Positions 22,401 through 47,889 are shown, counted from the first letter of the stretch. The stretch is 64,000 nt of DNA from Andalucia godoyi And28 (GCA_009859145.1 VRVR01000019.1:93073-157072), one strand, 5' to 3'. A program made the numbers and translations. The notes: generated by a model from the letters alone, not told the origin.

Positions 22401-25400
22401 CTGCAAAACCCCGAACTGCAGGAAGCAACAGATCATCGGTCCCTGTCGAAACAGCTAACTGGCTCGTCTTTGCAGCCGTTATGTTTGGAAGAATCGTCAG
22501 TTGCTGTGTTGCACCACGAATAAACAGATGAGAATCCACAGACGTAAACCCCACACTATAATTGCCAGCTGCCAACGCAGGGAGGACACAAACCATTGAC
22601 GACTGAAAGCGGCTTCGAACAAAGGTCTTGCCAATAGTGCAGTACCGATCATCAAGTCCTCGGACATCTTGGCCTTCCTTGTCCGTGACAACCAAAACAG
22701 GCATACCACCAATGACTGCACCAAAACCAGGAATCAATGTCTGTACATCCATTCTCCCCGAAACTGAGAATGCAAGCGACGAAGGAACGGACAAAAATGA
22801 CTTCTCCCCATCCACAGAAGTTTTCAGGGGCACAAGCTGCCCGTCGTACGTAGCAATAGTGTTCGATGAATTCAGGCCACCCAGAAGCAATACGGACGAC
22901 ACAAACACGTGGTCCGCACACTGCTCGTCCAGAAGCAGACATATGTCCTCTGCTCGCTCGCCTGATGCATGGCGTCCGCGGACCCAGAATGTGTACTCTG
23001 ACGAAGATATAATCGTTTTTGGATAGACATCTTCAACAGCAAATCCAGGCCGGACTTCGAACATTCCATCCACGAACAACAAATTATCTCGGACACTTGA
23101 TATGGCCACGGAAATCACGCAGAATCCTGAGGGAAAGCCATCAACGGCAACGGATACAGAGTCTCGAGCCACGGACAGCACGCCCACAAACATCTCGCCT
23201 CGCAGATACACACCGACATCGAGATGAAGAGACAGTGGGAGTGCAGACGTTAACGAAATCGTGAGCTGCGGTCCAGAAAGTGAGGACACAAGTTCAGAGC
23301 CACTGGCATTCACCGAACTGTACAGTGGAATCGAGAACACGGCTGTTTGCGTACTAGAAAAGAAGGAGACAATCTGGATGGAAATGGAGCTTCCAGAAGC
23401 CGATGTCAGCAACGGTTTCTTACATCCGATCAACCCATTCATTTCGCTTGGAAAATCTGGCTCCACAAACGTCTTTCCATTACCAAACACACAAAGAAGA
23501 CCCGCACTTTGCTCCACCGCGGACTGGCTGGCTACGTAGACCACTCCTGGTTGTTCGGATACCGGTGCATCATGGGAAAGTTCTGCATCCAACGCGGCGC
23601 TTGACTGGATGCCAATATGCCCAATTGTTCGCGCAAACATATGCAAACTGACGTTTCGGAAACCTAGAACCTGAAGCGAATAGGAAGAATGAGGATTCAG
23701 ACTCACATCAACTATCAATAGTTCAGAGGATACGCAGTAAGCAACGCAACTTCCATCAGCCACAATGCATTCTACGTTCTTCAAAAAACCGCTTCCTTTG
23801 ACCAGGAGAACAGACTCGCCGCCAGGTTGTGATACGGAGGTGCCAACAACAGACGCAAAAACAGGGCTCGCAACTATTTCCAAAGAATTAGACGTTGTCA
23901 TATGGACAGCGGAGTCACCAAGCACGACGGAAACAGGAGTGAATCCTGTGTGCAAAGAGGGCGGTACAGTAGCAACGAGGATGTCCGAAACAAAAGTTGA
24001 TGCACTGACTTCAAAGGACGAAACCAGCAGAGTGACCGGCTTTGTTAGCAACGACGCAGACAAAACGGGGGCGAATGACACATTAAATAGCCCCGTGTTC
24101 CAATCTGACGCTTGCATTGACGTCACTACATTTGACATCATTGTCTGCTGGCTAATTGTCGCATTACGAGACATTATCCAAGATGCCAATATAGGAGCGC
24201 CTGACAAAGGGGTTCGAACCCCAGGGACACAGCCATAAACAGAAACAGAAGAAGATTCAGAGAGTGACGGCAGAGTTGGAGACACACATCGCGCACGAAC
24301 ACCGTCAACAACTGTTGCACGCACAAAAACACCGTTTGACGAACTGGTAATGAACAAGCATCCCAAATTATCTGTTGTCAATGACGTTCCTCGCAGATCC
24401 ACAAGCGCACCTCCGCGTTCTGGAACCATCTGGACCGAGGATGAAAAGAAGGAGGGAGCATCGGCGATTCGGAGCTTTAGCGCATCATACGTTGCGTACA
24501 CATCAGTGTACGGCCCTGCAAATCGCAGCTGTAATTCTGCAATGGAAGATGTCGAAGGAACAGAAGAAGCGTCACACAGCAGCAGTCGAGACGAGATCCG
24601 CGTGACATCAGAAACCGACATCCCACCATTGAAATTGAATGAAAACACGCATTGGACGGCATCAACGACATGCTCAGTAATCAATACAATTCCCGATGTT
24701 CCTGGAACCGCAATTTGGGCCAGAATGGTTTTCAGCAATGAGGAGGCTCGAACTGAGAAAGACACAGGGTCGAGAGGCCTGACCAAGCTGTTATTGAAAG
24801 AACCACGAATCATTCCACCTTCGAAACCAACGTCAAGAGAAAAGAATCCCACGGAGGGAATCGCGGGAATGACGTCGTATGCCACAGACGTCGATCGCTT
24901 GTCCATTGCAATGCCATACGGACCTACATACATGTACATCACCTTGTTGCCGGTCATAGTGGGATTCGAAACCGAAAAGGTCACAGAAGCACCAGCATGT
25001 AAACACGATACGCGTCTATCAATTGACATTGACAGTGCGGTGTTCTGTACGCCAGTCAACAGTGCATGCTTCTCCCTGAATACCTCGACGGAACCAACAG
25101 CCATTTGATTCCGCAGATCGTAGCTAATGAAGACCTGCAAGGATGAAAGAGGCTTCAGCATGGGAGATACGGCAGCCATTCGGGCAGCGCCGTTCCAATT
25201 CAGGCGAATCACAGTGCGCAATAAGAAAGCCCAGACATGTTCAGCATCTCCTGCATATGGAGTGTCAATTTCGATTTGGAATCCACCAAGAGAAGATAAC
25301 AGTGTAGAAGCGAGACCGCCTGCCTCCTTCAAGTCTACAATCTTAATCTGCGCAAATTTTCTGCGAAAAGAAGTCCTAATAGTCATATACCGGTCCGTGT

Positions 25401-28400
25401 CCACGTCAGATGTTTCCGCAGACAGCAACGCAATACTGTCGGAAATGACTCGAATGGCAGTGATGTTTCCGTTGTCCACATAAAACTGCGAGGTTGCCAC
25501 AATAGATCCAAATTGAAAACTTGTTCCGCAGATGGTAATGACCGATTGAGCAGCAGAACCGATGGCCACACCCATAACCTCCGGGAAGGCCTTGACAATT
25601 TCTCCAGTAATTGGCACAGTGAATGAATAATGTACAAAGGCAGTCCACATGCCGCTACCAAACTGAATTCTCACAGGAACAAATCCCGACGCGATTCGCG
25701 GGACGTTGCATTCGAAAGTTAAACCAGACGCAACGGAAAATGCCCGGTATTCGTGGCCGTCACTTATCGTGCAAGATACAATGTCCACGAACGAAGGCAG
25801 TGCCGATTGCACAGAAAACGGCAAGGCGATATACTCATCCTGCTGGTTGCTCACAAATGTGGCAAGAAGGTTCGAAGGACTAGAGCTGATATTCAGTTCC
25901 ACAAGTCGAGGTACCAGAATAACACTAGCCGCCAACTGCTGCCGCATGTCAAGTGACCACGACACATTCATCACGTCCGCCGATGTCCGAACACCGGACG
26001 AAACAGGAAGCGGGCACGAAAATGTACCCGAAGGTTCCTCCGAAGCTGCAACAAACGTCTTTCCGTTCAAGAAGCAACCAGATCCTGGGTGTTGCCCGAC
26101 ATCACTTGCAAGCAATATTTTGTTTCCTGACGAGTACTCTGATCCAAGAGAACCAGCAAGCACTGTCACTATTGGACCAGAATGAACAGTAACAGCTGCA
26201 CCCCCCAAGCCTTCTGACAGCAGGATTGTCGTATCATTCTGAAATCCAACACTGCACCATACCAATCTGTCCTCCCCTGTAGGGACTGCAGCATTGACAA
26301 CAAAATACTTCGAGCTGACAAAAAATATGCTGGAGCTCGTTGCACCCGGAGCAACGCTGCCACTTTGGCCAACGATCTGAAGGCGGAGCGCGCTCGTGTG
26401 ATGTGCCATAACGCCAGTGCTCTCGAACATCAGCAGCGTTTCAAGTCCTGTCATGATGCTGTCAAAAACAGCACGCTTCACAATGATATCAGCAACGTAC
26501 TCAAATTTGAAAGACGGCATGTATTGCTCATTCGACTCCAGACCACTAATGGATACTGCAACGAACCCAGCAGCATGAGCAGGAGAGATGCAAGAACAGC
26601 GGATGCCAGTACATTCCGCAGCAACCATCGACAGCCCAAATGAGCAATGCGTGACAGCAACAGATCGATTGACAAGCAATGTAACCGATGTACCTCCTCC
26701 AACGCGTCCAAAGTAGGGATATGCATATGTTATGTTGCTTTCGATCTCCACAGCAAAGGTAACTGCGGATACCAAGGATCGTGAGGACTGGTGGGGATAA
26801 CTGTCTCCGACAGTCACCGCTGACAAGCCACCGGGGAACAACAATGGCAGTCGGCATACGCACGATGCTTCGGAAGCCCAGACTGACTGAATACGAGTCT
26901 TATCAAAGAAACAAGAAACGTCCGCATCTTGGAGGCCCGCAAATGCTTCTCCAACTACCGTCACCAAGGCACCGCTTCTGTATGTCCCGATTGTCGGTTC
27001 GACTCCAAAAACGGTTGGCTGACGGACAGCGAGTAATCGGTGGTCGTCGGATGGGAATGCAGCTGACATAGGATCAACATTGTTAATACCGTTACTGGAG
27101 ACGGACAACGACGACGGCCCAATGAACGCGGACGTGGTGTGCCTCGCAAGCAGGCACGTAGAAGACACGGCAAGAAGGCGAGACGAGTTCAACACCGTCG
27201 ACGCGAAAATGCTTCCATCACTCACCAAATGTACAGAAATTCCGCCCACTGCTGTCGGAGTCACAAAATTCGCACCAGAAATGGTCAGCAACAGAGAGCC
27301 CATGATACTGTATGTCCGTGGATACACTGTGAACACATGGGGAGAGGGGACTAATTCGAGGGACGCGCTCAGGAGACCCCGAACACCAGATCCATCTTGA
27401 TGAAGCAATTCCACCGGCTGGAATCCAAAACTGCTCCTCTTTTGCACCGGAAAAACAACAGTCTGCGCTCCTCCATCCACACGCAAAGAACCCACCTCTT
27501 CGATACCACCAATCCTTGCAATCCACTGGTATTCATCAGCAACGGCGAACGTTCCAGACAGAACAACACCTGCCCAGCTACCTCCGCTGGAAGAAATGCG
27601 AGAGCGGACTTGCAATGACCCGACATCTGCAGCACCTTGAATCACCGACCCGTTGACAGCGGAAGAGTAACGCAACACCGATACCCCTGCACTACCTGCG
27701 GTCAGCGATGCACACGCGCGCGGCTCAACACAGATGCCAACCGGGACGTGGCGGAAAGAAGTAAGGCCATCCACAAAAAGCGCAGGTGCAGCACAGCGCA
27801 AGCCCCCATGGGAGTCAATGACCGCTTCTACGACAACTCGACTGTCGAACAGGCAGCGCGCCAGCGCCATGTCCTGAAGAACGTGTTCTCCATCAAGAGC
27901 AAAACGCACATCCTGACCACCAGCTTGTTGCTGATCCCAAAGCGAAACATTGAGGACCATGGGCCGCGGCCGCGGTCGCACAGACAACGTGTCCTTGACC
28001 GCAAAATTGCGATCATTTGCAGAGACTACCAGTGCGAATCCCTCTGCAAAACTGGGGGCTTGCAGCATCGAGAGTGATATGTCCGCGAGCAGCACAGCAG
28101 ACGACACCGCAGTACAGATACAATGCGACGTGATGTTAGGAGCCGGAATACCAGCGAGACACACCCGGGTGGTCATGTCGGCTCCTGCCACGTCAACTCG
28201 GCCCCGCAAGAAATGGCGTCCAGTGACTGTCAACCTCACGGCCTCCAGCACATATCCAATGGTAGGATACACGTCCGATACCACCGGTTCCCCGACGTAT
28301 TCAAATGGTATATCCGTCGCCAGGATGTGGGATGATCCAGGATTTCCAGCGTCTATGGTTGCTATTTCGATTGTTACATATCCTTTGTTCGGAGGCGTCG

Positions 28401-31400
28401 TTCCGAAGACACAGTTGCCTACGAAGTTGCCTAATGTCGGTGTGCTTCCGAATGTCAAGATAAACTGCGTATATCTTGAAATGTTCAGAACTGGGTCCCA
28501 TGAGCTGACATTGAATGGCGTGAGTAAGATTTCTGAGCCACCTGCGGAGCTTCCAAACCGTACGTTCTGAGAAGCAGAATAATTACTAGAGATTTCAGTA
28601 ACATGCAACGTTGCTGCGAAGTCGTAATCGAGCAGACGCGGGCCTACGGACAGCGAGACTTCGTACGCACCTGGCAAGAGGAGAGGTGGCAAGCAAGAAA
28701 TATGGCCGGATGCGACGTCTGTTCTTGAAACAATTGTTTTCCCAAAGCGGCACTGAGCAAGATTGGTGGATCGTTCGTCTAGTGTAGACGGAAGAACGAC
28801 ATCAATGGGGGCATTAGTCCACAAAATGTACAAATTTGGGCTCACAAGAAGTGTGTTTGGCGTAATGAAGCTCGGGATGGAGCATGCCGACTCGTGTACT
28901 GAGGAGTTTCCAGATGCGTACAGCAATTTCGAATAATTCGTGATGAGCGCATCTGCCAGTGGTGGAAACTCGAGAATGATGACTGCTGAAGAAATTGCAG
29001 ACTTGCTAGCACAAGCCTCGCCGAAAGAAAAGCAAAGATCGGTGTTGTGAAGAGCAGATCCAGTTAAAACAAGGAAATGTGAAGAATTCGAAAAAAGAGG
29101 GCCACTAAAACAGTAAGCAATAGACGGATCTTCTTCTATGAACAGCCCGCCAGCGAGCACAACCGACTCCATGTTCAACGTGCTACTCGCCAAATGCAAA
29201 GAGTAAAAGCCTGGGCGAAGGTGATCAATGTAGAAAATCAGCCTCTCTGTTGATGATGCAAAATCTAAAAGAAACGATGCACTGCCTACATGCAAAATGT
29301 CATGGACTCGCCCACTGAGGTTCCCGATAACGCTGATTTCGTAAACATCCTGGATCTTTTGGACGCTCGACAACGAAAAATTGCCTGATGTACTTTGAAC
29401 GCCTATCGTCTGCGGTGTTGTCAATGGACCAAAGACAGTTCCGCATGCAGCCTCTATACCGTCAGAATCTGGAAGCAACGGAACAGTTGGAGAAACTGAC
29501 ACGTCAAATGAAGTTTTCCCAAGGAAAACCACGCTCGCACTGTCTGTATAGATAGAGAGTGCGCTGCCGGATAGCAGAGGATTTGTTTGAAGAGTTATCA
29601 GACATCTGCTTTCCTCCACATACAGGATATCCGATGACAGCTGAAGTTTCGCTCCAAAGGAAGCAACGGACACAAACGCGCTGGGGTGTTGGGTGAATTG
29701 TTGAAGAAGAGACGCTGTCAAGTGAATCGAAAAGAGGACCAGTGATGAGGAAACAACAGAAGTAGAATTTGCTGAAATACCTTCGGATCCTGCGAATACC
29801 AGCAAGTCTGCTGGAATGTCCTTCCCTGATATGATCATTCTTGTGCCTTTCGAGAACGACAACGCACCAATAGATGTTGGAGGTGTATTTGAACGATGCG
29901 GCACTTGTAGCGATGAAGAATTGGTCAGCCTGTCTGGAGAAATGAATACGTCAATGGTACGGAATCCTCTTTGGAGAAGGGGAAGCACGCAACTGAACTG
30001 TAAGCCGGAAGAAGCCTTCCCAAGAGATTCAATTAAAGCATCAAAAGAACAGACGACCAAATCAGAGTTTGAAATTGCAGAAGCAAAAGACAGCTCTAAC
30101 ATGTCTGAGCTTGCCGAAATAATGGAGAACTCCAATCGTGGATTCACAGATAGGAACTGTGGAGTGTGGGACCGATAGTTAGAAACTTGGAAAGCCATGA
30201 GTATGGATCCAGGTTTCATAACCGGGGTCTTGCACGCGATCGTTGTGAACGTTGACTCCGAGGGCGCCACAAACGTTTTGTTCCCAAAAATACAGAAATC
30301 GATCTCACTACATGGGGCCCCGGAGAATGAAAGGAGAGCTCCTCCTGCTTCTTGGAAGTCTGAAAACGATGAAGACAACATCGCAGGTTGTGAGACAGAA
30401 GACACTGAAGAGAGGGATGCCGGAAACGAAATTCCGTCCACTGAATAATCCAACACCAATGTCGTGCCATCTGCGTACTCCGAAGAGAACGGGCACAAAA
30501 CGAGCGACGAAGAAATGAAGCTCGATAAAACAGAAGAACGGAGTCCAAATCGGCAAACAGCTGTCGACACGCGAGAAAAAAACTGTCCTATGACTGTAAA
30601 TAACGTCGATATGGATTTCACAGCTTTGGCTGGGAACACCTGAATGACCGACGGAGTTTCCACAATGTGCAGAGCTACGTTTCCGAAAGAATAGTCAAAG
30701 TGATTGTTCGACACACTCAACTCGGCAAAACCAGGGCGGCGAGACGTGACATCAAACGTTAACCAACTCGTATTCTGAGCTTTCGCCAGATATTCGTCAA
30801 GATTCAGCCGTGCACTGATAAACCTTGGAAAATCAGAAGAAAAAGATGATCCTCCAATTCCCAGCAGGTACGAGGTGCCTGAAGTTAGCGTTCGACGTCC
30901 CAGAAAAGAAGTAGTTCCAACCGCCGCCACGAAAACAGAAGATAGAGATGGATTTGGAATGGAGAAAAACTGAGCCTTCGCAATGGAGAAGTCGTGATTG
31001 TTATTGGATACTGCAATCTGGCCCATTCCAATAATACTCGGAACAACGCAAGAAAGCTCATTTTCGCTCACGAACGTCGCAAGTACAACAACAGTTGACG
31101 AAAATTCGAAACGGCATCGGAGCAGAGTCGTATCGCGGAAGTTCTCGCCCACCACAGTAACAACAGTCCCTTCGGCTCGGGCTCGCGGAATTGTGTAATT
31201 CGCTCTCGGAAATTCGGTCCAAGGGTCTTGATACACAAAGGTGGCAAACGACTCAGACGGCTCATCATCGTTGTACATAACAGCCACTTCCAAAGAGCCG
31301 AAAATGGTTTGCGGTGGAGCAGCAAAGACAACCGTTGACGAGGTTGAACCGGAAAGCGGAGTGGCGAGTTCGCTTCCGACTTTCGTCTTTAGTGTTCCAT

Positions 31401-32523
31401 ACGACGTCTCAATAGGAAAATTTGCTCCTGAGATTGTTATAATCGTCGAGACAGTACCAATTGTTGGTGTGATTGAGGACACGATGATTTGCGGAAGGTA
31501 CAGGAAAGAGGTGGCATGCACAAAATTCTGCTTATCTGTGGACAGATCCACCTCCCGCACGGTTCCAAAAACTTTCTTCGGAGAGACACAAACTAACGTT
31601 GCTGCACCAAGGATTTCTGCAACAATGTACTCCACATTTGTGCTGCCTGCATCGGAAAATCTGCACCACGGAACTTTTGTGGAATCAAAGTTTGCACCAG
31701 AAACCGTGATTCTTGTTCCTCCAAGTTCGGAACCCCTTCTTGGAATTACGGACGATACAGTCATGACTGGCAAAGAAGTGAATGTGTGTCCGTTGCAACT
31801 GAATCCTATTTTTGCAATGTTCACTTCAAGACTAAAAACCGTCCGTTGTGAAGCGAAAACAGGGGCAACGCACACAATGTGGTCCCAGGATACATATGTC
31901 GGAATAACATCCGTGACAACGGCTTGATTCCCGTCACTGAACCGGCATATCCTGTCGTTCGTACTGGAAATGTTCAGAAAGCCTTTTCCGAATACTGTAA
32001 TGGCTGTTGCTCCGTTGTGGGGTCCAGAGGTTGGGAAAATCCCGTCGATTCGGAACGGCTGACGAGCGTGGATACTAAGAGAGGTTATTGCAAATGACCC
32101 CGCTGCCGAAAATCGGATTTGCTGATGTATTGTCGAATCTGCGAGATCGGGGCTGCTCCATTGTCGAGCCAGTGCTGATCTGTGAATTTGAAACTGCGTA
32201 AGGCCGTTGACCGCTGTCAACACTGCTGGCAGCCAGTCATTCGTAGCACAATCTGCGGCATCTGCCTTATTGCATGATTCAACTTGCGGCGCTGCACCTG
32301 AGGATGCAAAGGTCACGTTTCCACCAAACTGCAGATTGACGTTTCTGATGTATAATGGACCTGCAGAAGAAACCCCGAGGGATACGGAAGATCCTGCGCC
32401 ATTTGTTATTGTGTAGGCGGAAACGGGACAGAAACTTTCCTGGCTCAGCTGAACCTCAGAGAAGACAGTGCTCGAAACAGAGAGGAGAATCAACAACAAA
32501 ATGTCAATAAATATTTTCATCAT
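10485..32523 (-). CDS. Giant membrane protein (about 7345 aa if the frameshift is corrected): signal peptide, long IPT/TIG array, GCC2/GCC3-like Cys-rich repeats, about 11 TM helices
   Basis: The 6921-aa ORF 11758..32523 has a signal peptide (MMKIFIDILLLILLSVSSTVFS), many IPT motifs (e.g. VSSVIPRRGSELGGTRITVSGANF, LSPAFGPVSGGTLVNVSGTGF), CPxGxxC repeats and 3 TMs. It turns into non-homologous-looking sequence after MWKKK. The overlapping 584-aa ORF 10485..12239 continues with about 8 more TM segments from KNHVVIAAL. No clear introns seen. Confidence 0.85.
12175..12183 (-). other. A9 homopolymer at the frame junction of the giant gene
   Basis: Minus strand reads ATG TGG AAA AAA AAA TCA CGT. 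Removing one A gives ATG TGG AAA AAA AAT CAC GTG (MWKKNHVV), which joins the two ORFs. Confidence 0.8.
14000..15600 (-). repeat. Tandem Cys-rich GCC2/GCC3 (ephrin-receptor-like) repeat block of the giant protein; boundaries approximate
   Basis: Repeating CPPGSFC, CPKGFEC, CTPGSF, CPAGKVC, CPFGVYC, CPTGYYC, CPQGTYS, CPAGFFC, CEAGYYC, CPEGTTS pattern. Confidence 0.85.
21230..22143. repeat. 914-bp direct repeat, copy A (inside the giant CDS)
   Basis: Reads the same as 27392..28305 (offset 6162 = 3 x 2054). ORF-track translations in several frames are identical between the copies (e.g. 21475..21915 and 27637..28077). Confidence 0.93.
27392..28305. repeat. 914-bp direct repeat, copy B (inside the giant CDS)
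   Basis: Encodes FEYVGEPVVSDVYP...QPVELLHQDG, which appears twice verbatim in the 6921-aa translation. The flanks diverge abruptly. Confidence 0.93.
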
Positions 32524-32983: not shown

Positions 32984-33409
32984 ATGTTTGGCATGAATAA
33001 CATGCTGATTCCGGCGCGTTTTTTGTTTACGATGGGAAACTTCTTGGTTCTTCTGATGATGTTGAACACTCGTGGTCCGAACGTCAAGGCCTCCGTTCCT
33101 ACTTCTTATTCCCAGAGTCAGTACGACACAGCGGATTCATCTCTCAAGAATGCCATTATCGTCAGCATAACATGCATGTGCGTCGATGTCATTGGCCTAT
33201 TCAGCTCATTTTCTATGTTTTCACCATTTATGAACAGTTTGCATGTTCTCTCCAAATTCATCGCGACTCTTGTCCTGTCACTGTTTATTTCCGAAAAGCT
33301 GAATTATGTTGTGGTTTGGTATGTCTGGGGGTTCATTACGTTTCCCGTTACATTTCTTGAGATTTGTCGAATAGCGCTTATTGCGTGGTCCAACAAGATG
33401 GAGTACTGA
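32984..33409 (+). CDS. TMEM107: Ciliary transition-zone membrane protein TMEM107, 141 aa
   Basis: LIPARFL start, NVKASVP...YDTADSSL loop, FSSFSMF and WYVWGF...FLEI, with 4 hydrophobic segments. Matches the TMEM107 pattern and size. Confidence 0.85.
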   Translation: MFGMNNMLIPARFLFTMGNFLVLLMMLNTRGPNVKASVPTSYSQSQYDTADSSLKNAIIVSITCMCVDVIGLFSSFSMFSPFMNSLHVLSKFIATLVLSLFISEKLNYVVVWYVWGFITFPVTFLEICRIALIAWSNKMEY

Positions 33410-33499: not shown

Positions 33500-34309
33500 T
33501 CAGCTCTTTTCCGAGAGGGATTCGGACGGTGCAGCCATCAAATCTTTAGCCTCGACAAGATCCACGTACGCCGACGACGCCGGCTGGCTGAGTGGTTGAG
33601 ATCCCGCGGTTTCCAGTTCAAGCTCCGCAGTGGATGCACCACGAGCACTTTGAAGAGGCGTCTCGGCACCGGAGTCCTTGGTTGCCAGAGCCTGCTCTTC
33701 GTCACGTCGTTCCACTGCCACTGGGAGTGTGCTATCGTTGACGAGATTATTTTCCGGCGTCTCGGAAGGACCAGAGGTCTCAAGTTTCGACTTCTTCGCA
33801 GCCGGGCCAGAACCGTCTTCGGCTGTTTGCGGCGTGTGACGGTCCACAGCGTCCACACCCTGGGGTCCAATATGTGAGAGGCTCCGAGAAGGCGCCCCCT
33901 GTCCAGCCTCATTCATCACATCTGAGGGCATGGCGCCTACTTGCTGCGTGTGAAGGTTCTGCATTTGCAACCGAATCTTGTGCGAGATGTTCTCCACGGA
34001 AACCAGACGTGCGTTCGTAACCTCATGCTGCAGCCTCATTTTCTCTTCATCTGACAAAGCCATACCTAACAGAGCCTGCTCCAAGACAGATTCCAGGCGC
34101 CTTCCTAGTTCGGACTTCAAATGGAGTTCGCTATTTAGCATCAGCGCCAGGCGCAAATTTGAATCGGCGTAGGAGGACAGTGCCGTTTTCTCCGATTTGA
34201 AATCGTCAATCTCGTTTCGTAAAAGCTGCCGCTGCAGCTGCAGATTTGCATGTTCATCTACAAGTCTCTGACAAAACTGCGCTACTTTGGCGGTTGACGT
34301 GTGCGGCAT
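33500..34309 (-). CDS. Groucho/TLE N-terminal (Q) domain protein lacking WD40 (AES/GRG5-like architecture), 269 aa from the ATG at 34309
   Basis: FCQRLVDEHANLQLQRQLLRNEIDDFKSEKTALSSYADSNLRLALMLNSELHLKSELGRRLESVLEQ...EVTNARLVSVENI aligns by eye with the TLE Q domain (CDRIKEEF...LASEKTEMQRHY...GLNIEMHKQ..I.KRL...AVERAKQVTM.EL). It is followed by a disordered acidic tail with an NLS-like PAAKKSKL. The ORF-track upstream extension to 34426 is probably not real. Confidence 0.7.
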   Translation of the reverse strand: MPHTSTAKVAQFCQRLVDEHANLQLQRQLLRNEIDDFKSEKTALSSYADSNLRLALMLNSELHLKSELGRRLESVLEQALLGMALSDEEKMRLQHEVTNARLVSVENISHKIRLQMQNLHTQQVGAMPSDVMNEAGQGAPSRSLSHIGPQGVDAVDRHTPQTAEDGSGPAAKKSKLETSGPSETPENNLVNDSTLPVAVERRDEEQALATKDSGAETPLQSARGASTAELELETAGSQPLSQPASSAYVDLVEAKDLMAAPSESLSEKS

Positions 34310-34682: not shown

Positions 34683-36614
34683 ATGTCATCCTCTTCTGGC
34701 ACTGGACGTTCTGGACTGCGACCTGTAAGCTTGGATGGGTCACACATCTTGATTGCCCTTGCCGGCGATACTGGTGCGGGAAAAACGTCGTTCTGCCACG
34801 CCCTTGTTGATGAAACGCCGTTTTCTGGTGAGCACTTCAGCCAGCTTTCGGGACCTGTGGTGATTCCTGCGGCGTTGGCTGGTGGGTATGCGGATCTTGC
34901 GATCCTGGACTCCAATGCTGATCAAGCGGACCATTTCCAGACTATCTTGTCCAAGTCTCATGTTATTGTGCTCATGTTTGATGGATCGGATCCGACAGAT
35001 GACTATCTTGCAACTCGGAGGGTGTCATCTTATTGGCTGCCATTGTTCAAGAGCCTGAATTTGAAGGTTCCAGTTATCATTGCAAAGAACAAGAAAGATA
35101 TCCCTGCAGAAAACGCCGCGCTGGAGTCCGTGCATGCTGCGATGCGCAACGGAGAACTTTGTGCAAACGGACTTTACCTGTGCGAATTGTCGGTCAAGGA
35201 TCGGCAGGGAATCGGCTTGGTCGTTTCTTATGCCCAAAAAAGCGTGTTGTATCCCATCACCCCGATTTTCGATTTTGTGAATCAAACATTGACACCGCAC
35301 GCCGCACGGGCATTTTTGCGGATCTTTCGATGCATTAACCGGTCTTGCACAGGCTACTTGTCAGATGATGAATTAAGGCAGATGCAGCGCCGTGTATTTG
35401 GATCGGATTTTCAGCCTGCTGAACTGCAGTTGCTGAAGCAGTCGTTGAAGCGGGCCGTTGCACAAACAGCAGACAGCCAAGACAATGGCCCTTCAGATGA
35501 TGTCAGTGTTGCAGAAGACCAGTCCGGGGTGTCTTTTGAAGGTTTTTTGATCCTGATGCTGCGGTTTGTTACACAGGGTGCCTCAGAGGCAATCTGGGCA
35601 TTTTTGCGTTCCTTCCATTATGACGACAAGCTAGAGATTGAAATCAATCTTCCGTCTTTGCATCATGAGCCCGACCAGTGTGTCGAGCTTTCATCTGAGG
35701 CGGTGGCGTTTATGACCGAGGCGAACAAACAGCTTTTTGCCGTGTTGCTCAACACGGCCACAGGCGGCCTCTTGTTTCCTAGCATGGATCAGCCGAAGAC
35801 TCTTGAAGAAGAGGCTTCCTCTAGCAGCGGCCAGCGTGCTGTTCCTCTTGATTCAGTAATTGCTCAGTATCAAAGTCTTGCGCTATTTGATGTCGCCACG
35901 GTTGCGCGCTTGTTTGCGTTGTCCGGATACGACTCCGATGATTTTGGCAAGCTATTCAAAGTCTCCAAGCGTAGAGCACTGGAGCGTCGGACCAATCGTG
36001 TGCAGCGTTCCGTTTTGCAATTCTACGTGTTTGGATCTCCTAATTGTGGAAAGTCGACTTTGCTAAAGAATGGTAGTGCGGTGCGCTTGCAGTCCAAGCA
36101 CACTCTTGTGTTTCGAGAGATTCCAGAGTCCTACGTCGACAAGGTCCTTCAGAGCCGCGAAGCTTTAGATGTTCCCGACGTTTTTGTGTTGGCCTACGAT
36201 GGTGCAGATCCGTACTCATTTCAGTACATTTCTCAGGTATACCGAAAGCTGGTTGCGATTGTTCCGGAGACGCCGTGTGTGTTTGTGGTGACAAAGGCGG
36301 ATCAAGATATTGTTGTTCAGCAAAATGATGAGTCTCCGGAGGTGTTTTGCAAGTCTAGAGGGTTACCGTGGCCGCCAATTCTGACGTCTGCACTGAACGA
36401 TGATTTTGGGTCGTTTTTCGACAGTCTGCTGCAGGTTGCATTACGCCCACAGTTGTGTTTGCCTTCCGTGTCGCAGAATGCACCCGGCTCGGCCCCTTGC
36501 GTGTCTTGTCCACCATCAGCGTCCAATCTCCGCAAGATCGTCTTGATTGGAAGCTCAGTTGTCGTTGTCGTCGGTGTTGCTGCTTATCTGTATCGGCGAG
36601 CAAAATCAAACTAG
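34683..36614 (+). CDS. RHOT: Mitochondrial Rho GTPase Miro (Gem1), 643 aa from the ATG at 34683
   Basis: GDTGAGKTS P-loop, SYWLPL, NKKD, AQKSVLYPITP, EF-region FEGFL..WAFLRSFHYDDKL, second P-loop GSPNCGKSTLL, LAYD, TKAD and a C-terminal tail anchor (IVLIGSSVVVVVGVAAYLYRR). Confidence 0.93.
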   Translation: MSSSSGTGRSGLRPVSLDGSHILIALAGDTGAGKTSFCHALVDETPFSGEHFSQLSGPVVIPAALAGGYADLAILDSNADQADHFQTILSKSHVIVLMFDGSDPTDDYLATRRVSSYWLPLFKSLNLKVPVIIAKNKKDIPAENAALESVHAAMRNGELCANGLYLCELSVKDRQGIGLVVSYAQKSVLYPITPIFDFVNQTLTPHAARAFLRIFRCINRSCTGYLSDDELRQMQRRVFGSDFQPAELQLLKQSLKRAVAQTADSQDNGPSDDVSVAEDQSGVSFEGFLILMLRFVTQGASEAIWAFLRSFHYDDKLEIEINLPSLHHEPDQCVELSSEAVAFMTEANKQLFAVLLNTATGGLLFPSMDQPKTLEEEASSSSGQRAVPLDSVIAQYQSLALFDVATVARLFALSGYDSDDFGKLFKVSKRRALERRTNRVQRSVLQFYVFGSPNCGKSTLLKNGSAVRLQSKHTLVFREIPESYVDKVLQSREALDVPDVFVLAYDGADPYSFQYISQVYRKLVAIVPETPCVFVVTKADQDIVVQQNDESPEVFCKSRGLPWPPILTSALNDDFGSFFDSLLQVALRPQLCLPSVSQNAPGSAPCVSCPPSASNLRKIVLIGSSVVVVVGVAAYLYRRAKSN

Positions 36615-37421: not shown

Positions 37422-39566
37422 ATGCATGCGCACGAGTGTGCAGCGTCCTCGTCGGAAGAAGGCGAAGGACCTGGCTGTAAAAAAGGAAGTATTACGCACG
37501 GGCCGGTTTGCTATTGTGGAATCGGCTGCGGGCCCGTGCGTACCCTAACATTCAATCATCCTGTCAAGGATACGCCGGTGGAGGTCTCCACAGCTGTCAA
37601 GACTGAGCATCGCGATGTGTGCGATGCCAGTCATGCGTCCAGCTCCTCTCCGGACAACGAAAAGAAGAGTGCTGTTCCATTTTTCGAGCAGCCGACCTCG
37701 GCAGTCCCCTCCTCTATTTCGGCTTGTATTTCTTCTTCTTCTTCTTCATCTTCATCTTCATCTTCATCTTCATCTTCATCCACTTCCTCTTTATCTTTCC
37801 ATGCCTCCAGCTCCAGCTCCCGCTGTGGCTCCTGCTGTGGCTCCACTTCCACGGACTGCTTGTCTGTGGCACAAGATGTGTGCAATTCGGAAATTGAAGA
37901 CAGGGATTTCGGTTGTGACAACAGTCGCGATGTCAACAGTGGTCCGCTCTCAATTCAGACCGACAACGAAGGGATTTCTTCTGGATTCGTCTCCACTTTC
38001 TCGTCTTCTACTTCCAGCACGTCTCCGAGGTCCTCAGTTACCTCTCGGCGATCAAGTACTGACGTGAATGTGTCAGATGCATTCTCTGAAGACGGTTTGC
38101 CACCACGCCTGATGGTTGATTCGGATCTATCCGATCGCTACTCCGTTTATCAGGATCAGCAGGAGCGCCGCCAGTTTCTCCACCAACTCTCGGCGTTGTT
38201 TCATGATCTCCCGCACGAGTGTCTGAACCACGTGGCCTTGGCTGGATTGGATCAGCTCATGAAAACTGCAGATTGCAAATATGTTTCCCTATCCGACGTT
38301 GAGAATGTGCTTTCCTCAGTCGTCGGAAGCTTGAAAATGGTGACTACCAAGAGCGAGACTTTGGATTCCTTGTCTTCTTCTCTTCCTGCTCATCGTCGCC
38401 GCGCAATGCTCAGGCGCCAGCAGTTGCAGATCGCTTCGCACCGTTCTCGCAGCCCTTCTCGTGAATTACGGATGCCGGTCCATCTGTCAAATTTCTTGGC
38501 AGAACGGATGCGCGCGTACCTTTTAGAGAAGCAGGTTTCCAGTGCCATCATTAGTAATCGGACTGTGCATGTGTACACTTCTCGCCATTCCGCAGATCCG
38601 TCCTTGTGCGATTTTCAGGCCAGCGAGTCAGTGTCCGTAACGAGTGCCGCGAGCGGTGCTTCCCTGTGCTTCATCATGAAGCGCGTCATCCTGGTCTCTG
38701 ATAAATCGGAATCAGGTGAGGACATGTTCTCGTTCGGCATGGTCTGCGAAGAACAGTACGGACGGGGACTCAATCGTGCAAATATTGCATATTTGGAAGC
38801 TGCACCGCATTCAAAGGTATTTCCTTCGTCAATCAAGCCTCTCATCCAGTCCTACGCGGAGTTTTTGGAACGCTTCACAGGCATTGAAAAACTGCACTTG
38901 TGGGCCGATCCTCCATCTGCGGATTTTCCATGTTTTTTGTTTCGTGTCAACTATACTGCCGACGAATGGGATGCGTTCGCGAAAACTCTCAAGTCTTCGG
39001 CTTCCTTGCACTGCATGTATCGCTCCTTTTTGGGTGTGTATGAGCCCGTTGTGTTGGCCTATCGTGTGAAGTTGGACCCGCTCCCGCAGTTTGGAGTTCT
39101 TGATGATCCTGATGACGCAGACGTGAAATCAAGCATGGAACTGAAGACTCTATTTCGTTTGACGCAGCAAGAGATCGACCGCCTCCTTGATGAGCTTAAT
39201 GAGCCGCTGAAAGAGACGCTGGCTGTTGATTTGAAGCAGACATGCCCGAACGACGTATTGAAACGGCTCGAATCCCATTCTCACCGACTGGGTCATGAAG
39301 GCATTCGTCTGCGTTGGTTCGATGCGGACGCTCAAATGGCTTGCGGAAGCGCTTCCTTTGTCCGTCGACAGTTTGTTGCTGATTATGACTTTTCTTCGGT
39401 GCAGTCTGCAGTTGCCTCCTGCAGACGAGCCATTCATGATTTGGAGTTGATGTTTGGATCAGGATGCGCTTCCGTCTCGTGCTTCTGGTCCTCTGGGCTG
39501 GCCATGGTGCAAGATCGGTTTGCTCCGAGTGTCTTGTACTCTGACGGAAACTCCCCAGTACCCTAG
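37422..39566 (+). CDS. Divergent p300/CBP-type (KAT11) histone acetyltransferase domain protein with Ser-rich N-terminus, 714 aa
   Basis: KRVILV..SGEDMFSFGMVCEEQYG..RANIAYLE..LIQSYAEFLE..LHLWADPP..FLF..MYRSFL..LPQF..DFSSVQSA parallels p300 (KALF..DGVDLCFFGMHVQEYG..RVYISYLD..ILIGYLEY..GHIWACPP..YIF..WYKKML..LPYF..EFSSLRRA). No bromo, TAZ or KIX domain recognised. Start and end are uncertain. Confidence 0.75.
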   Translation: MHAHECAASSSEEGEGPGCKKGSITHGPVCYCGIGCGPVRTLTFNHPVKDTPVEVSTAVKTEHRDVCDASHASSSSPDNEKKSAVPFFEQPTSAVPSSISACISSSSSSSSSSSSSSSSSTSSLSFHASSSSSRCGSCCGSTSTDCLSVAQDVCNSEIEDRDFGCDNSRDVNSGPLSIQTDNEGISSGFVSTFSSSTSSTSPRSSVTSRRSSTDVNVSDAFSEDGLPPRLMVDSDLSDRYSVYQDQQERRQFLHQLSALFHDLPHECLNHVALAGLDQLMKTADCKYVSLSDVENVLSSVVGSLKMVTTKSETLDSLSSSLPAHRRRAMLRRQQLQIASHRSRSPSRELRMPVHLSNFLAERMRAYLLEKQVSSAIISNRTVHVYTSRHSADPSLCDFQASESVSVTSAASGASLCFIMKRVILVSDKSESGEDMFSFGMVCEEQYGRGLNRANIAYLEAAPHSKVFPSSIKPLIQSYAEFLERFTGIEKLHLWADPPSADFPCFLFRVNYTADEWDAFAKTLKSSASLHCMYRSFLGVYEPVVLAYRVKLDPLPQFGVLDDPDDADVKSSMELKTLFRLTQQEIDRLLDELNEPLKETLAVDLKQTCPNDVLKRLESHSHRLGHEGIRLRWFDADAQMACGSASFVRRQFVADYDFSSVQSAVASCRRAIHDLELMFGSGCASVSCFWSSGLAMVQDRFAPSVLYSDGNSPVP
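37730..37780. repeat. (TCT/TCA)n poly-Ser tract in the KAT11-like gene
   Basis: Read directly: tcttcttcttcttcttcatcttcatcttcatcttcatc. Confidence 0.85.
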
Positions 39567-40343: not shown

Positions 40344-42845
40344 ATGAACAACCAAAGTGACATTGTGGATACCAATCAGTTTCGATTGCGGCTTGCCAGT
40401 CTGCGTCTGAGGGTTCTCCAGAGCAAGGTGCACGAAAGCTGCGCCTCATCAACTCGTCCTCAGGCTGTATCATTTCAGGCTGCTGGCACACAACAGAGGC
40501 CCTTTGAGGCCCGAATTTTCGGTCCACAGGGATCGATGCACGATGAGCAGCAACATTCCAGAAGAATTCAGACGCAGCAGTTAATGTCTGTCCTGCAATC
40601 TCAACACGAGGCGCTGAGATCGATGATGGCAGAGAGACAGAAGCTGCGGGAGACTCTGATTAAGATGGCAGAAGAAGAATTAGAAGAAGAGCCAGAATCG
40701 GAATCTCAGCTGCGTCAACAGGAAATGTTGCCTCAGCACCACACTCTGGGTGATGCGCGACAGGCTATTTTGTCAACGGCACGAAGGCGGAGTTCCAGTC
40801 GCGAACCTGATTTTGCCCCCGATTGGTTTGAAAACTTTGAAAGGAAGATCGACCGATTGCTGAGAGCCAAGGAACGCGAGAATAGTGTGCACAATGAGTC
40901 CACAAGAGAGCCAGCGAGAGGTGCAGCGAGTGGCTTGCGCCGTGTCCGCGGCTACGGTCCTGAGAATACCAGCGATGCTTTGGAAAATACGGATATCCAG
41001 AGCAAGTTACTGCAGGACTTGGTGCAGCAAAACATTGAAACACAGAAGTTCCTGATGGAACAGCAAAGATCTCTGATTGACGGCGGTTGTCGGGAGGCTC
41101 AGAAGAATAACAGGTTCACGAGACCAGGGAGTCCATCGGAATCGGAGAACGATATCCATACCGAGAATTACATGCCTCACAGGATCGGTGTTAACGAGAA
41201 GACCAGCAACAGCAACAGCAACAGCAACAACAGGGATGCAGACGAGAAGGGGCGAACGGAGACTTTGCAGGATCGAAGACAGTCCTTTGCGAAGCCGTCG
41301 AGCCGAATGCAAGCGTTGGAGCTGGATTCCAAGAAATCTGCTCCTGGCGACTTTTTAAATTCCAGTGACGACGACGAAGGCACAGATAGCTCAGACCGCG
41401 AGGAGGAAGATTCTGATCTCAAAGCGGCGCGAGAGCGTCTAAAGGCCAAATTGGCGGCACTCGAGGGATCCTCCACTGCGAAAGCTCACACACCACTGCG
41501 AAAGCTTCGCATCCGCGTCTGGTATGTGTTGTTTGCGTTTATTCTCCGAAAGCTGTTGAAACAGAGGAAAGAGGATGCAGGTCGGTCGAGCACCGAGATG
41601 ACTGCTTATCTGGATTCATTTCTTCGTGCCTCCGAGTTCCTGACACGACGTGCTGTCAAGATCCCATTTGTTTCTGTTATTCAAGAGTCGAAAATGGAAC
41701 TGGACATCATCAAGCCGGGAGAGAAGAGTGGAGAGGAATGGTCGTCAGTGCTGAAGAGCGAGAAAGAAACGCAAGTCCGCATCATGAAATTGAAAGTCAA
41801 AGCAAAAGGAATTCTCGATGCGTTGACAGAACATTGGATCCTTCCGTGGGTGTACCTCCGGTTTCATCCCGACAAGCGCCAGCCTGTCTTTTCGGATGAT
41901 GAGCAGGATGACGCTGCAGCTTCTGCAGCACCATCCGCTCGAAACTCGGTCAATCAGTCCGTTTATTCATTGAAGAAACAGGAGCAGGATGCTTCGTCTT
42001 TTGCATTGTTTCTGCAGAGTTCTCGTCGACATATGGATGACGAGAGTGTCAAATCCCATCTCGCGCTAATTCGGTTTTTCAGAGACTACCTTTCCCCCGG
42101 TAACTCCTTTCCGAAAGGATGGTATGCGCCTCAGGAGTCAAAGTTCATGTCCTTCAGTCCCGACGACAATGCAGCACCCCTTTCTATCTCTGTGGAGGGA
42201 GTATTCATTCAGGTGGCACACTTTATTTTCTTTCGAGTTTTGATTGCCCGTGTCTTGCTACCCTCTTCATCAGCGGTTGTTTCGGGGTCTTCTGCGTTCA
42301 ACTATTCTGGCAATAAGAAGGCCGCTCGGAATTTTTTGGTGATCTCTTCGCTCCTGTACGAAATTGTAATCCAAGCGCTTGTCAGGGGATGCCGAATTAT
42401 GCGGTCCGATGCTGTTTATGCGCCCGTTGAGAATCAGTTGTTGCCGGATGGAATCAGGAAAGCTCTTGCGAACGCAGTGTTTGGATCCTGGATGCAGGAC
42501 ACGTCCGCAAGTGTCTTTCGGTTCCTGTGCGACTTTGTGTTGTTGGTATTGTGCAAGAGGAAAGGAGAGGGTCTGTGGAGAAAGTTGAGTTTTCGATCCT
42601 CCGTGTTGGAAACATCTGCTTCTGGGCCGGCTTCCTCTGCTGAGGATCTGTCATGGTCGTCGTCTATCTGGTCCTTCTTTGTCGCGCTCATCGAAGATGG
42701 AACGTGGAAGAAGCATCGAAAGGAAAATAGAATGGACGCGCAGAGAAAGGCTTATCAATCTCAGGTTCAGGAAATCCGGAAGGTGCTGCAGGATTGGCTT
42801 GCAGTCCAGCATGCTACAGACGCGAGAGGCCCAATGCGAAGCTAA
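40344..42845 (+). CDS. Hypothetical protein, 833 aa: coiled-coil/disordered N-half and helical globular C-half
   Basis: Long ATG-initiated ORF with normal composition that fills the space between neighbours. No family recognised. Confidence 0.8.
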   Translation: MNNQSDIVDTNQFRLRLASLRLRVLQSKVHESCASSTRPQAVSFQAAGTQQRPFEARIFGPQGSMHDEQQHSRRIQTQQLMSVLQSQHEALRSMMAERQKLRETLIKMAEEELEEEPESESQLRQQEMLPQHHTLGDARQAILSTARRRSSSREPDFAPDWFENFERKIDRLLRAKERENSVHNESTREPARGAASGLRRVRGYGPENTSDALENTDIQSKLLQDLVQQNIETQKFLMEQQRSLIDGGCREAQKNNRFTRPGSPSESENDIHTENYMPHRIGVNEKTSNSNSNSNNRDADEKGRTETLQDRRQSFAKPSSRMQALELDSKKSAPGDFLNSSDDDEGTDSSDREEEDSDLKAARERLKAKLAALEGSSTAKAHTPLRKLRIRVWYVLFAFILRKLLKQRKEDAGRSSTEMTAYLDSFLRASEFLTRRAVKIPFVSVIQESKMELDIIKPGEKSGEEWSSVLKSEKETQVRIMKLKVKAKGILDALTEHWILPWVYLRFHPDKRQPVFSDDEQDDAAASAAPSARNSVNQSVYSLKKQEQDASSFALFLQSSRRHMDDESVKSHLALIRFFRDYLSPGNSFPKGWYAPQESKFMSFSPDDNAAPLSISVEGVFIQVAHFIFFRVLIARVLLPSSSAVVSGSSAFNYSGNKKAARNFLVISSLLYEIVIQALVRGCRIMRSDAVYAPVENQLLPDGIRKALANAVFGSWMQDTSASVFRFLCDFVLLVLCKRKGEGLWRKLSFRSSVLETSASGPASSAEDLSWSSSIWSFFVALIEDGTWKKHRKENRMDAQRKAYQSQVQEIRKVLQDWLAVQHATDARGPMRS

Positions 42846-46200: not shown

Positions 46201-46539
46201 AAACGAAGGCGCCAAAGCAGGTTCCGATGCAGACGAATTGCTCACTGGCGAATCCACCACACCCCGTTGCATAATTCGAATAGGTCGACTAGGCAACGGA
46301 CTTCCAACCCCCGTTGCCATCGTGGTGGCGGGTGACGTCGCAGTTGAGGTGGAAGCGTGTGTCGCTGTCGTTGCCATAGAAGAAGGCGTCGGAGAGTCCG
46401 GAGAACCAGGAATAGGCACTCGAGTCAGCAGATGACTGGGGTGATGGCTAGTAGTCCATGCTTCTGTGGCTGCTAAATCATCCGGAATAGGAAGCTCGTC
46501 ATTCCCAGATTCTGCAGTGCTCGGTGCAGAATTACTCAT
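43258..46539 (-). CDS. STRIP1: STRIPAK subunit STRIP/FAM40/Far11 (N1221 + DUF3402), 1093 aa from the ATG at 46539
   Basis: C-terminal RCKSIVLRSVGHILLLLLK..LLILKFL..LRVLQKLTK..SRVSVLVHFKA..MKRML..LYSLKIIK...LGRKFR..N.KLVSLIY..DMWL matches the FAM40/Far11 C-terminus. The ORF-track start at 46557 is TTG. Confidence 0.88.
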   Translation of the reverse strand: MSNSAPSTAESGNDELPIPDDLAATEAWTTSHHPSHLLTRVPIPGSPDSPTPSSMATTATHASTSTATSPATTMATGVGSPLPSRPIRIMQRGVVDSPVSNSSASEPALAPSFSDDASATYAGGGGGVVGAASSRKSRRPLPKDSLNLDSSQEAISMMSRMETPISGRANGKDGAGSGLGQSAAKGKMSTMYERKPMNGRHRYVETQSTAGVEDALCETGDDMEHAHEANLQSMNGQIFDLRNAPSTASASLISSSSSTLSSSSSSSSSSVSGESIYSGEDTDSSSGGPSRERYYFDWVYLDPRLDWYYFEEIFSYIDDPVHEPPRHVLWSLREDKGSFSLPENVLSQSIQSVFAPTTSVSFVVDRLESLDEQVRLCALRKLYDIALGIPSVFFIGGGSASSATVRIGCDSFSDSSQSTAPEKDGVQRGCDLLLSEGCLIPVLQFAMNVCSSAMTRVRTDKDIAKSSPASSPSQPPPHAQSKLNDSSQTHMQSTEPNAQEAAGEFSADSPLRSVANSSSLTYLRALCRWSLSLALLLTERCRQHILRQEKSLVDGDGDGSDHSDLTANLSAELRTVLWNGQSPLENVSQLLILVATDHNQVLPVKRLVLLFEKILVATCGPIDSCRARSCVDPIVDGTDEGAASSGHYTNSARGSRQKSRRRYLDELQSKLEGRRFLGSVPKSLKEAVDVTAKHALEDRVSRVTEFVNRMTDEYHISTSHLPAFSTAGTVSSADNASLVVEDYFTRMVPQMDQFVNALLKIMYASLPSAKKSFYRGHIFFLADLERFSSPDDLPAGVTYATAPSPLSKLPELVATMGKSRCKSIVLRSVGHILLLLLKKWKRVLHGLPSEDFAMRLVDGKVLLLILKFLTALEWQSEMIHEMLDWPIFSGSISEYPTKINFRAWSITVLFLRVLQKLTKHVNSRVSVLVHFKAHSSMKRMLLVSNEQTFFMPEVNLYSLKIIKSMAPLLGRKFRGISANLKLVSLIYHNLKNDIGDMWLTDDSASSSSTSSVGSLSSKEEDTERTSAEDKKDLAAEEEHLKAALVTWIAEFSRRHRIPVSGLSTSLRNDDLSVDELFAGTSVDSFIQDELSCF
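45730..45758. repeat. (GAG)n trinucleotide repeat, poly-Ser in STRIP (minus strand)
   Basis: Read directly. Confidence 0.85.

Positions 46540-47009: not shown

Positions 47010-47889
<880 letters not shown>

Follow-up and report, generated by a model that had tools for sequence, protein, structure and literature searches.

Groucho/TLE co-repression was long seen as specific to animals and has now been traced to unicellular eukaryotes. Animals also have short forms of these proteins, which bind the long forms through the Q (TLE_N) oligomerisation domain (PMC2997355; bioRxiv 2022.01.10.475695), and the vertebrate short form, AES, has been proposed to be a tandem duplicate of TLE2 in chordates (PMC2997355). 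Does a protist possess such a pair, and what would its short member do? The question is raised by a 64,000-nucleotide stretch of the genome of the jakobid Andalucia godoyi And28 (VRVR01000019.1:93073-157072; called the window below, with positions counted from its first letter). Here, a first-pass annotation had picked out a gene encoding only a Q domain close to a full-length Groucho, and had proposed an AES-like dominant-negative module that evolved independently by partial duplication. We find that the shorter of the two genes (P0001) is the 'short Groucho' of A. godoyi, encoding a TLE-type Q domain followed by an acidic disordered tail and no WD40 propeller. Sequence comparisons show that it is a genuine, selectively maintained, protein-coding gene and a paralogue of the long Q-plus-propeller gene (P0003) located 14 kb away.

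Results

The short protein contains a TLE-type Q domain

The Q domain is a long coiled coil, and the version found in animal TLE1 assembles as a dimer of dimers. In the short A. godoyi protein, whose exact 269-residue sequence is present in the public protein collection, a match to Pfam TLE_N (PF03920) extends over residues 9–123 and profile positions 5–117 of 118 (34.9 bits, E 2.2e-8; curated cut-off 32 bits). The same scan, taken to E ≤ 10, found no family besides TLE_N and no WD40 signal in the short form. A phmmer search against all PDB sequences returned the TLE1 Q domain as the sole match (4om2/4om3, E 4e-5). The monomer was also modelled with AlphaFold2 from its single sequence, which predicts two helices (residues 4–82 and 87–125, pLDDT about 85–98), as would be expected for a TLE_N coiled coil, and a pLDDT below 50 from residue 130 onwards.

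It could be argued that such a protein is a generic coiled coil which resembles TLE_N by composition. The Pfam scores are just 1–3 bits over the cut-off, that of a metagenomic ortholog (P0002, see below) falls just under it (29.4 bits, E 1.1e-6), and a Foldseek search of the monomer model against the PDB gave nothing below E 3, a search made uninformative by the bare helices of the query. We therefore turn to the family itself: against a hidden Markov model (HMM) built from 90 Q domains with the Andalucia clade left out, the short-form domain scored 53.3 bits, compared with maxima of 9.0 bits among 1000 plain shuffles and 15.1 bits among 1000 shuffles that preserve the heptad pattern. Because the real score is far over both maxima, the TLE_N match reflects homology as opposed to coiled-coil composition. 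The short form is also colinear with the Groucho family across about 110 residues, family-specific motifs included. When 1.84 billion representative proteins were searched exhaustively with an HMM, 152 of them matched, with both window proteins and P0002 scoring above 187 bits and all others at or below 73 bits; every match that is named, and every one whose sequence was checked, belongs to the Groucho family. A generic coil is hardly credible on this evidence, and the TLE-type Q domain reported at first pass is upheld.

Evidence that the short gene is complete and maintained

The ortholog P0002 is a protein of 363 residues from JGI sample 3300042934, which is 62% identical to the short form in the Q domain and has no propeller. 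Conservation between the two begins at the same methionine (ATG 34309), the in-frame sequence upstream of it not being conserved, and across 110 gap-free codons pN is 0.24 and pS 0.93, such that synonymous sites are saturated. The P0002 contig (L001) also preserves the gene order of the window, in which the short gene is followed by a convergent TMEM107 gene and then by the N-terminus of a giant secreted protein. TMEM107 is 61.6% identical between the two sources, on a par with the Q domain of the short form; for the N-terminus of the giant protein the figure is 37%. When JGI metagenome contigs were scanned for the pattern of the short-form alignment, 600 stretches matched, none of which was confirmed.

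Several near-invariant family residues are missing from the short form, which might suggest a non-functional remnant of a Groucho duplicate or an over-called open reading frame (ORF). This is very unlikely, given that the 269-codon frame is intact, that the ortholog has an intact frame with the same start and an identity limited to the Q domain, that pN is low while synonymous sites are saturated, and that gene order is conserved. The earlier remark that this is no fresh pseudogene copy agrees with the pN value and with the low identity (20–21%) between the Q domains of the short and long forms.

The missing propeller might alternatively be encoded elsewhere, the short ORF being a first exon that is spliced to WD40 exons. 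Introns occur in 12% of the A. godoyi genes checked, the remaining 88% being intronless in a nuclear genome of about 20 Mb (PMC7050145), and there is a look-alike in another protist (P0005 in contig L003) in which a TLE_N ORF is directly followed by a WD40 ORF. In the window, however, TMEM107 begins on the opposite strand 90 bases past the stop codon of the short gene, and the gene beyond it encodes a 6921-residue secreted protein with its own signal peptide, so that hidden WD40 exons have no space to occupy. When all six frames of the window were scanned, two TLE_N ORFs and one Groucho-like propeller were recovered, and no further ones; the ortholog ends in the same way. Splicing to distant WD40 exons is thus extremely improbable. 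The absence of WD40 repeats that was first noted is borne out by the Pfam scan, by neighbours that fix the gene boundaries, and by an ortholog that shares both architecture and gene order.

A divergent long form lies in the same window

The first-pass annotation had described the gene at 48279..50984 as a complete Groucho. Its two domains are indeed present, but the propeller is so highly derived that the description holds only in part. The 901-residue protein begins with 51 residues rich in Gly, Ser and His, which are followed by a TLE_N domain (Pfam 33.4 bits over residues 59–144; TLE1 Q domain E 1.1e-6) that scores 70.2 bits against the family HMM, compared with a shuffle maximum of 12.9 bits. 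A low-complexity linker of about 380 residues, within which a CAG/CAA tract lies at 49332..49364, then leads to the propeller. The linker is absent from an ortholog in a Logan assembly (L002, 1281..2756; 491 residues), in which the Q domain is joined almost directly to a propeller that is 37% identical to that of A. godoyi (E 6e-75). A further long-type ortholog, P0163, comes from JGI sample 3300042922 and is 45% identical. A word-index homolog search with the whole 901-residue query returned only the query itself, through its polyQ words, and removal of the linker added only P0163. The neighbourhood of the long gene is not kept in L002, where there is no SWEET gene upstream.

AlphaFold2 predicts a seven-bladed propeller (pLDDT 80, pTM 0.82). 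When this model was compared with the PDB using Foldseek, TLE1 (1gxr_A) ranked second of about 2000 matches, and TLE1 entries had the lowest rmsd listed (2.2–2.6 Å); the top 25 also include TLE6-containing complexes and Tup1, the rest being G-beta subunits with similar E-values. In pairwise BLAST the blades align in register with ichthyosporean (E 5e-6) and animal Groucho (E 8e-8), and the best match of the long form outside its clade is the Groucho of Naegleria. A phmmer search of the propeller alone against the PDB listed only generic WD40 proteins and not TLE1, and the assignment therefore rests on structure together with the in-register BLAST alignments. Divergence is evident from an HMM of holozoan Groucho propellers, which gives 298 bits for Pharyngomonas, 150 for Naegleria and 26–37 for the Andalucia clade, with A. 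godoyi itself at 26.

The residue pair F661/E677, part of the pocket for EH1/WRPW peptides, separates Groucho from Tup1 (Copley 2016, PMC4943189). In the ortholog P0051 this pair reads N/A in an HMM alignment that is weak in that blade, and the same reading is extended to P0003 and P0163 through a conserved AVNS..AGKA, the HMM alignment of P0003 itself stopping short of the site. To judge from these residues, canonical EH1/WRPW binding by the long-form propeller is doubtful. No Tup_N match was found in either the short or the long protein with Pfam to E ≤ 10, and on the basis of its TLE_N domain and architecture the long gene is filed as a divergent member of the Groucho family.

The look-alike mentioned above was considered as a further short form. 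P0005 (194 residues, TLE_N only) is encoded on L003 (35..1547; JGI sample 3300002378, protist), and it was rejected because a WD40 ORF of 315 residues starts within its end; L003 carries a long Groucho that a frameshift or small intron has divided in two. Among outside sequences other than L002 and P0004, it has the Q domain closest to that of the Andalucia long form.

Origin of the pair

The start codons of the short and long genes are 13,970 bases apart, and we estimate the chance expectation for two paralogues to lie within 14 kb in a genome of roughly 20 Mb at about 0.1%. In a neighbour-joining tree of Q domains with bootstrap, AES lies among the animal TLEs and the Ichthyosporea form a separate group (90% bootstrap), while the two Andalucia proteins join Heterolobosea in a weakly supported non-holozoan group (62% bootstrap). 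The tree does not unite the short and long forms as sisters. The idea of a partial duplication consequently finds no phylogenetic support, and the 14-kb proximity is the sole hint of a local origin. Independence from animal AES, which had also been proposed, fares better: AES is a proposed duplicate of TLE2 in chordates and the Andalucia sequences are placed with heterolobosean as opposed to holozoan sequences, and an origin of the short form independent of vertebrate AES is for these reasons supported. At 27% identity to AES, the short form bears no sign of descent from the TLE2-derived lineage.

P0163 and P0002 come from sister JGI samples (3300042922 and 3300042934) of one project. From the sample numbering and the similar divergence of the two contigs we infer that both derive from one organism, and a relative of A. 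godoyi would therefore keep both forms.

Between the two genes of the window lie a DUF3402 gene (striatin-interacting-protein-like) and two ORFs, of 714 and 833 residues, without a Pfam match. The public protein collection does not contain the 714-residue sequence in this form, and so its gene model probably differs.

The short form lacks a near-invariant family motif

We compared the two Q domains with the family, in which the 3–4 spacing of hydrophobic columns suggests a heptad register. Of the 35 positions occupied by a hydrophobic residue in 90% or more of the family, 27 are retained by the short form and 26 by the long form. The L-N-x-E-x-H...E..R-L segment (L, N, E, H, E, R, L) is preserved in the short form as well. 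Where the family has Y-Y-E..Y, each residue at least 96% conserved, the Andalucia short form reads N, L, R and L, and the two orthologs together N-L/M-R..L/A; Andalucia, L002, Pharyngomonas and Naegleria retain an aromatic-aromatic-E..Y cluster in their long forms. The first of these substitutions introduces Asn51 (alignment column 53, which is N in both short forms and F/L/F/Y in the Discoba long forms). Buried Asn pairs are a classic determinant of self-pairing in coiled coils. Across columns 53–58, the aromatic and Glu residues of Y-Y-E are gone from the Andalucia-like and Pharyngomonas short forms and are kept by vertebrate AES.

The acidic tail has diverged in sequence between the short-form orthologs and retained its acidity. 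That of P0002 has a pI of 4.05 and a net charge of -33, cannot be aligned with the Andalucia tail and shares no conserved motif with it. The NLS-like motif reported at first pass is present as KKSK; it is short and absent from P0002, and is the weak point of that description.

Comparison with known Groucho systems

The short form resembles vertebrate AES/TLE5 (GRG5) in having a Q domain without a propeller, in coexisting with long forms and in an action that would be expected to proceed through Q-domain oligomerisation. In AES the Q domain differs very little from those of the long TLEs, whereas the Andalucia short form is 27% identical to AES, is non-holozoan in the tree and is without Y-Y-E..Y. 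Their C-terminal regions are also unlike: the GP region of AES contains 23% Gly plus Pro and 7% Asp plus Glu, while the Andalucia tail (15% and 17%, respectively; pI 4.4) is not a GP domain, and no alignable motif was found between the two. LSY-22 of C. elegans provides a second comparison, being a divergent, propeller-less Q protein that is encoded apart from a single long Groucho, UNC-37. To our knowledge, no partner of the TCF type is to be expected in a jakobid. LSY-22 is a co-repressor with UNC-37 and TCF (bioRxiv 2022.01.10.475695).

Within Discoba, Pharyngomonas kirbyi has a comparable pair. Its long form (P0106, EP00761_P008145) has 521 residues, with TLE_N at 47.8 bits and strong WD40 matches, and its short form (P0103, EP00761_P014722) is a TLE_N-only protein of 126 residues (45.2 bits) from a separate transcript with an ORF labelled complete; the two are 27% identical. 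P0103 shares with the Andalucia short form the loss of the conserved aromatic and Glu of Y-Y-E, but it is nearly tail-less, and the propeller of its long partner is well conserved (298 bits, compared with 26 for Andalucia). The two short forms are 21% identical, which is too low to tell a common from a separate origin. We found no description of the Pharyngomonas pair in the literature.

TLE_N-plus-propeller orthologs have been described in Ichthyosporea, Corallochytrium and, as one example, Trimastix, and the Naegleria propeller has been placed within the Groucho clade in the same study, which does not mention short forms (Copley 2016, PMC4943189). The Andalucia long gene shares the combination of TLE_N and C-terminal propeller and extends its range to jakobids, although the propeller of the Andalucia clade is far more derived and is without the F/E pocket pair. 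Our literature searches found no short Groucho form in a protist. Fungal Tup1 and plant TOPLESS follow the same co-repressor design of an oligomerising N-terminus and WD40 repeats, but their N-terminal domains are unlike TLE_N. We know of no propeller-less paralogue that acts as a regulator in the Tup1 or TOPLESS systems.

Neighbouring features of the window

Spacers in A. godoyi measure 44–691 nt and lie mostly between oppositely oriented genes (PMC7050145). The genes of the window alternate between strands, with spacers of about 90–400 bases and no apparent introns. Of ten window proteins checked against the public collection, nine are present there (from EukProt), and the Miro-like GTPase alone is also listed from NCBI. 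The A. godoyi genome paper lists the ERMES protein Gem1/Miro as _00736.mRNA.1 (Table S1: 643 residues, 0 introns; PMC7050145), and the window Miro ORF has the same length and is identical to that protein over the stretch compared, about 450 of the 643 residues. This match places the window in the nuclear genome of A. godoyi and rules out Corallochytrium, a compact holozoan with a known Groucho, which had been considered as the source. Neither Rfam nor tRNA scans of the window gave a match, and a bacterial promoter and terminator scan was set aside as irrelevant for a eukaryote.

The giant secreted protein (11758..32523, minus strand) contains, in addition to the signal peptide, many IPT/TIG-like repeats, Cys-rich repeats and a membrane region. 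Its ORF includes a direct repeat of 914 nt, 100% identical, at 21230..22143 and 27392..28305 (6162 nt apart and in frame), through which about 300 residues are encoded a second time. It reflects either a duplication of very recent date within the gene or an artefact of assembly. A multi-pass membrane ORF of 584 residues (10485..12239, minus strand), read in a different frame, overlaps the giant ORF over its final 480 nt or so, and the end of the giant ORF looks non-coding. This suggests a frameshift or short intron near 12.1–12.2 kb, in which case the true product would have about 7,400 residues. A long (CA)n microsatellite occupies 47014..47125, immediately 5' of the start codon of a SWEET-like transporter gene (47125..47889).

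Table 1. Positions of the short and long Groucho genes, their parts and adjacent genes in the 64,000-nucleotide window.
Feature	Position	Strand	Remarks
Short Groucho gene (P0001)	33500..34309	-	Complete CDS with stop codon, 269 aa; ATG 34309, stop 33500
Short form, Q (TLE_N) oligomerisation domain, residues 1–125	33935..34309	-	Pfam, PDB match, shuffles, predicted helices, colinearity
Short form, Asn51	34157..34159	-	Substitutes a 97%-conserved aromatic at a probable heptad core position; conserved in ortholog
Short form, acidic low-complexity tail, predicted disordered, residues 126–269	33503..33934	-	pLDDT <50; pI 4.4, net charge -13
Short form, KKSK, NLS-like motif, residues 172–175	33785..33796	-	In sequence; not conserved in P0002
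Long Groucho-like gene (P0003)	48279..50984	+	Complete CDS, 901 aa; MGRKR start conserved (L002 ortholog: MGRRK)
Long form, Q (TLE_N) domain, residues 52–176	48432..48806	+	Pfam 33.4 bits; retains F-F-E..Y
Long form, linker, Gln/His/Ala/Ser/Pro-rich, low-complexity, residues 177–560	48807..49958	+	Translation, composition
Long form, C-terminal 7-bladed WD40 propeller, very derived Groucho type	49959..50981	+	AlphaFold2, Foldseek
TMEM107 gene	32984..33409	+	Convergent with short Groucho, closes its 3' side; Pfam TMEM107 97 bits
Gem1/Miro GTPase gene	34683..36614	+	Divergent neighbour of short gene
Intervening ORF	37422..39566	+	Between the pair
Intervening ORF	40344..42845	+	Between the pair
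DUF3402 gene	43258..46539	-	Between the pair

Discussion

The architecture of the short gene, its pairing with a long gene and an origin independent of AES all stand; a dominant-negative function and a partial duplication are conjecture. The best explanation we can offer, and one that we favour tentatively, is that the short form co-assembles with the long form, lowers the number of propellers per complex and attenuates repression. Co-assembly is preferred because the animal short forms set a precedent for it. The hydrophobic core kept by the short form, the occurrence of both forms in related lineages and the closeness of the two genes also speak for it. The short form would work through Q-domain oligomerisation and would share oligomers with the long form, as when a short dimer docks head-to-head on a long one. 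Mixed complexes of this kind would present fewer propellers, and hence fewer sites for transcription-factor motifs and chromatin, and would acquire acidic tails. Repression by the long form would be weakened as a result, making the short form an anti-repressor or tuner. Both the hetero-oligomerisation and the dominant-negative effect are purely conjectural, being drawn by analogy with the animal proteins.

A number of observations weigh against co-assembly and attenuation. The Q domains of the two forms are only 20–21% identical and are not sisters in the tree, and the short form is without the Y-Y-E..Y motif that all of the long forms retain. At its probable core position, facing a Phe of the long form, Asn51 would be expected to disfavour an in-register heterodimer; a tetramer that combines a short dimer with a long one would be unaffected by this argument. 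As for the long form, the canonical pocket pair is missing from its propeller, and its role as a repressor is presumed. KKSK is not conserved, so that nuclear localisation of the short form is no more than putative. Finally, in C. elegans the loss of LSY-22/AES phenocopies the loss of UNC-37/Groucho (bioRxiv 2022.01.10.475695), the short form there being a partner in repression and not an antagonist.

Several of these points would be accommodated if the short form were a stand-alone homo-oligomer, whose Q-domain pairing specificity changed after an old duplication. It would then be a coiled-coil scaffold presenting acidic tails, and could bind basic chromatin proteins or other partners. Such a role is suggested by the loss of the Y, Y, E and Y residues conserved in at least 96% of the family, by an Asn at a probable core position that is conserved in both orthologs, by the low identity to the long form, and by the proposal that LSY-22 makes homocomplexes of its own (bioRxiv 2022.01.10.475695). 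It is harder to reconcile with the co-occurrence of long and short types in two related sources and in Pharyngomonas, and with the retention of both the L-N-x-E-x-H...E..R-L segment and the hydrophobic core; tetramers could, moreover, still form from unlike dimers. We regard a stand-alone scaffold as possible, if somewhat doubtful.

The nematode phenotype points in another direction, namely to a cooperative partner like LSY-22 that joins the long form in its assemblies and on which repression depends. AES itself acts either positively or negatively (PMC2997355), and the co-retention of both forms fits this role equally as well as it fits attenuation. However, the acidic tail has no conserved motif able to recruit a repressive enzyme, and exchanging propeller-bearing subunits for short ones should reduce valency. 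For these reasons we think it unlikely that the short form is a cooperative partner, and return to co-assembly with attenuation as the preferred reading.

That Groucho exists outside animals was already known (Copley 2016, PMC4943189). What is new is a short Groucho outside animals, found in a jakobid and equipped with a different tail and an altered core motif; the recurrence of long and short forms in Discoba has likewise not been noted before. A broader proposal, and as a whole rather an improbable one, would be that the pairing of long and short Groucho is not an animal invention. It would be either an old feature or one that evolved repeatedly, present in at least two Discoba lineages (Andalucia-like jakobids and Pharyngomonas) and with three or four separate origins among eukaryotes, and the acidic-tailed short form of the jakobid would be an anti-repressor that provides a simple on/off switch for a Groucho that reads a non-EH1 motif.

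The presence of TLE_N genes in a jakobid, together with those of Heterolobosea and Trimastix, pushes the Q domain near the base of the eukaryotes. The jakobid also provides an independently originated case of the long-plus-short design, which was thought to be a refinement of vertebrates and nematodes. Should its two forms interact, A. godoyi would be a minimal system in which to relate the stoichiometry of Q-domain oligomers to the strength of repression, its appeal being a genome of about 20 Mb that is nearly free of introns and a single gene for each form within a 64-kb window. It would also, on the same premise, reveal the ligand of a Groucho propeller without the canonical peptide pocket.

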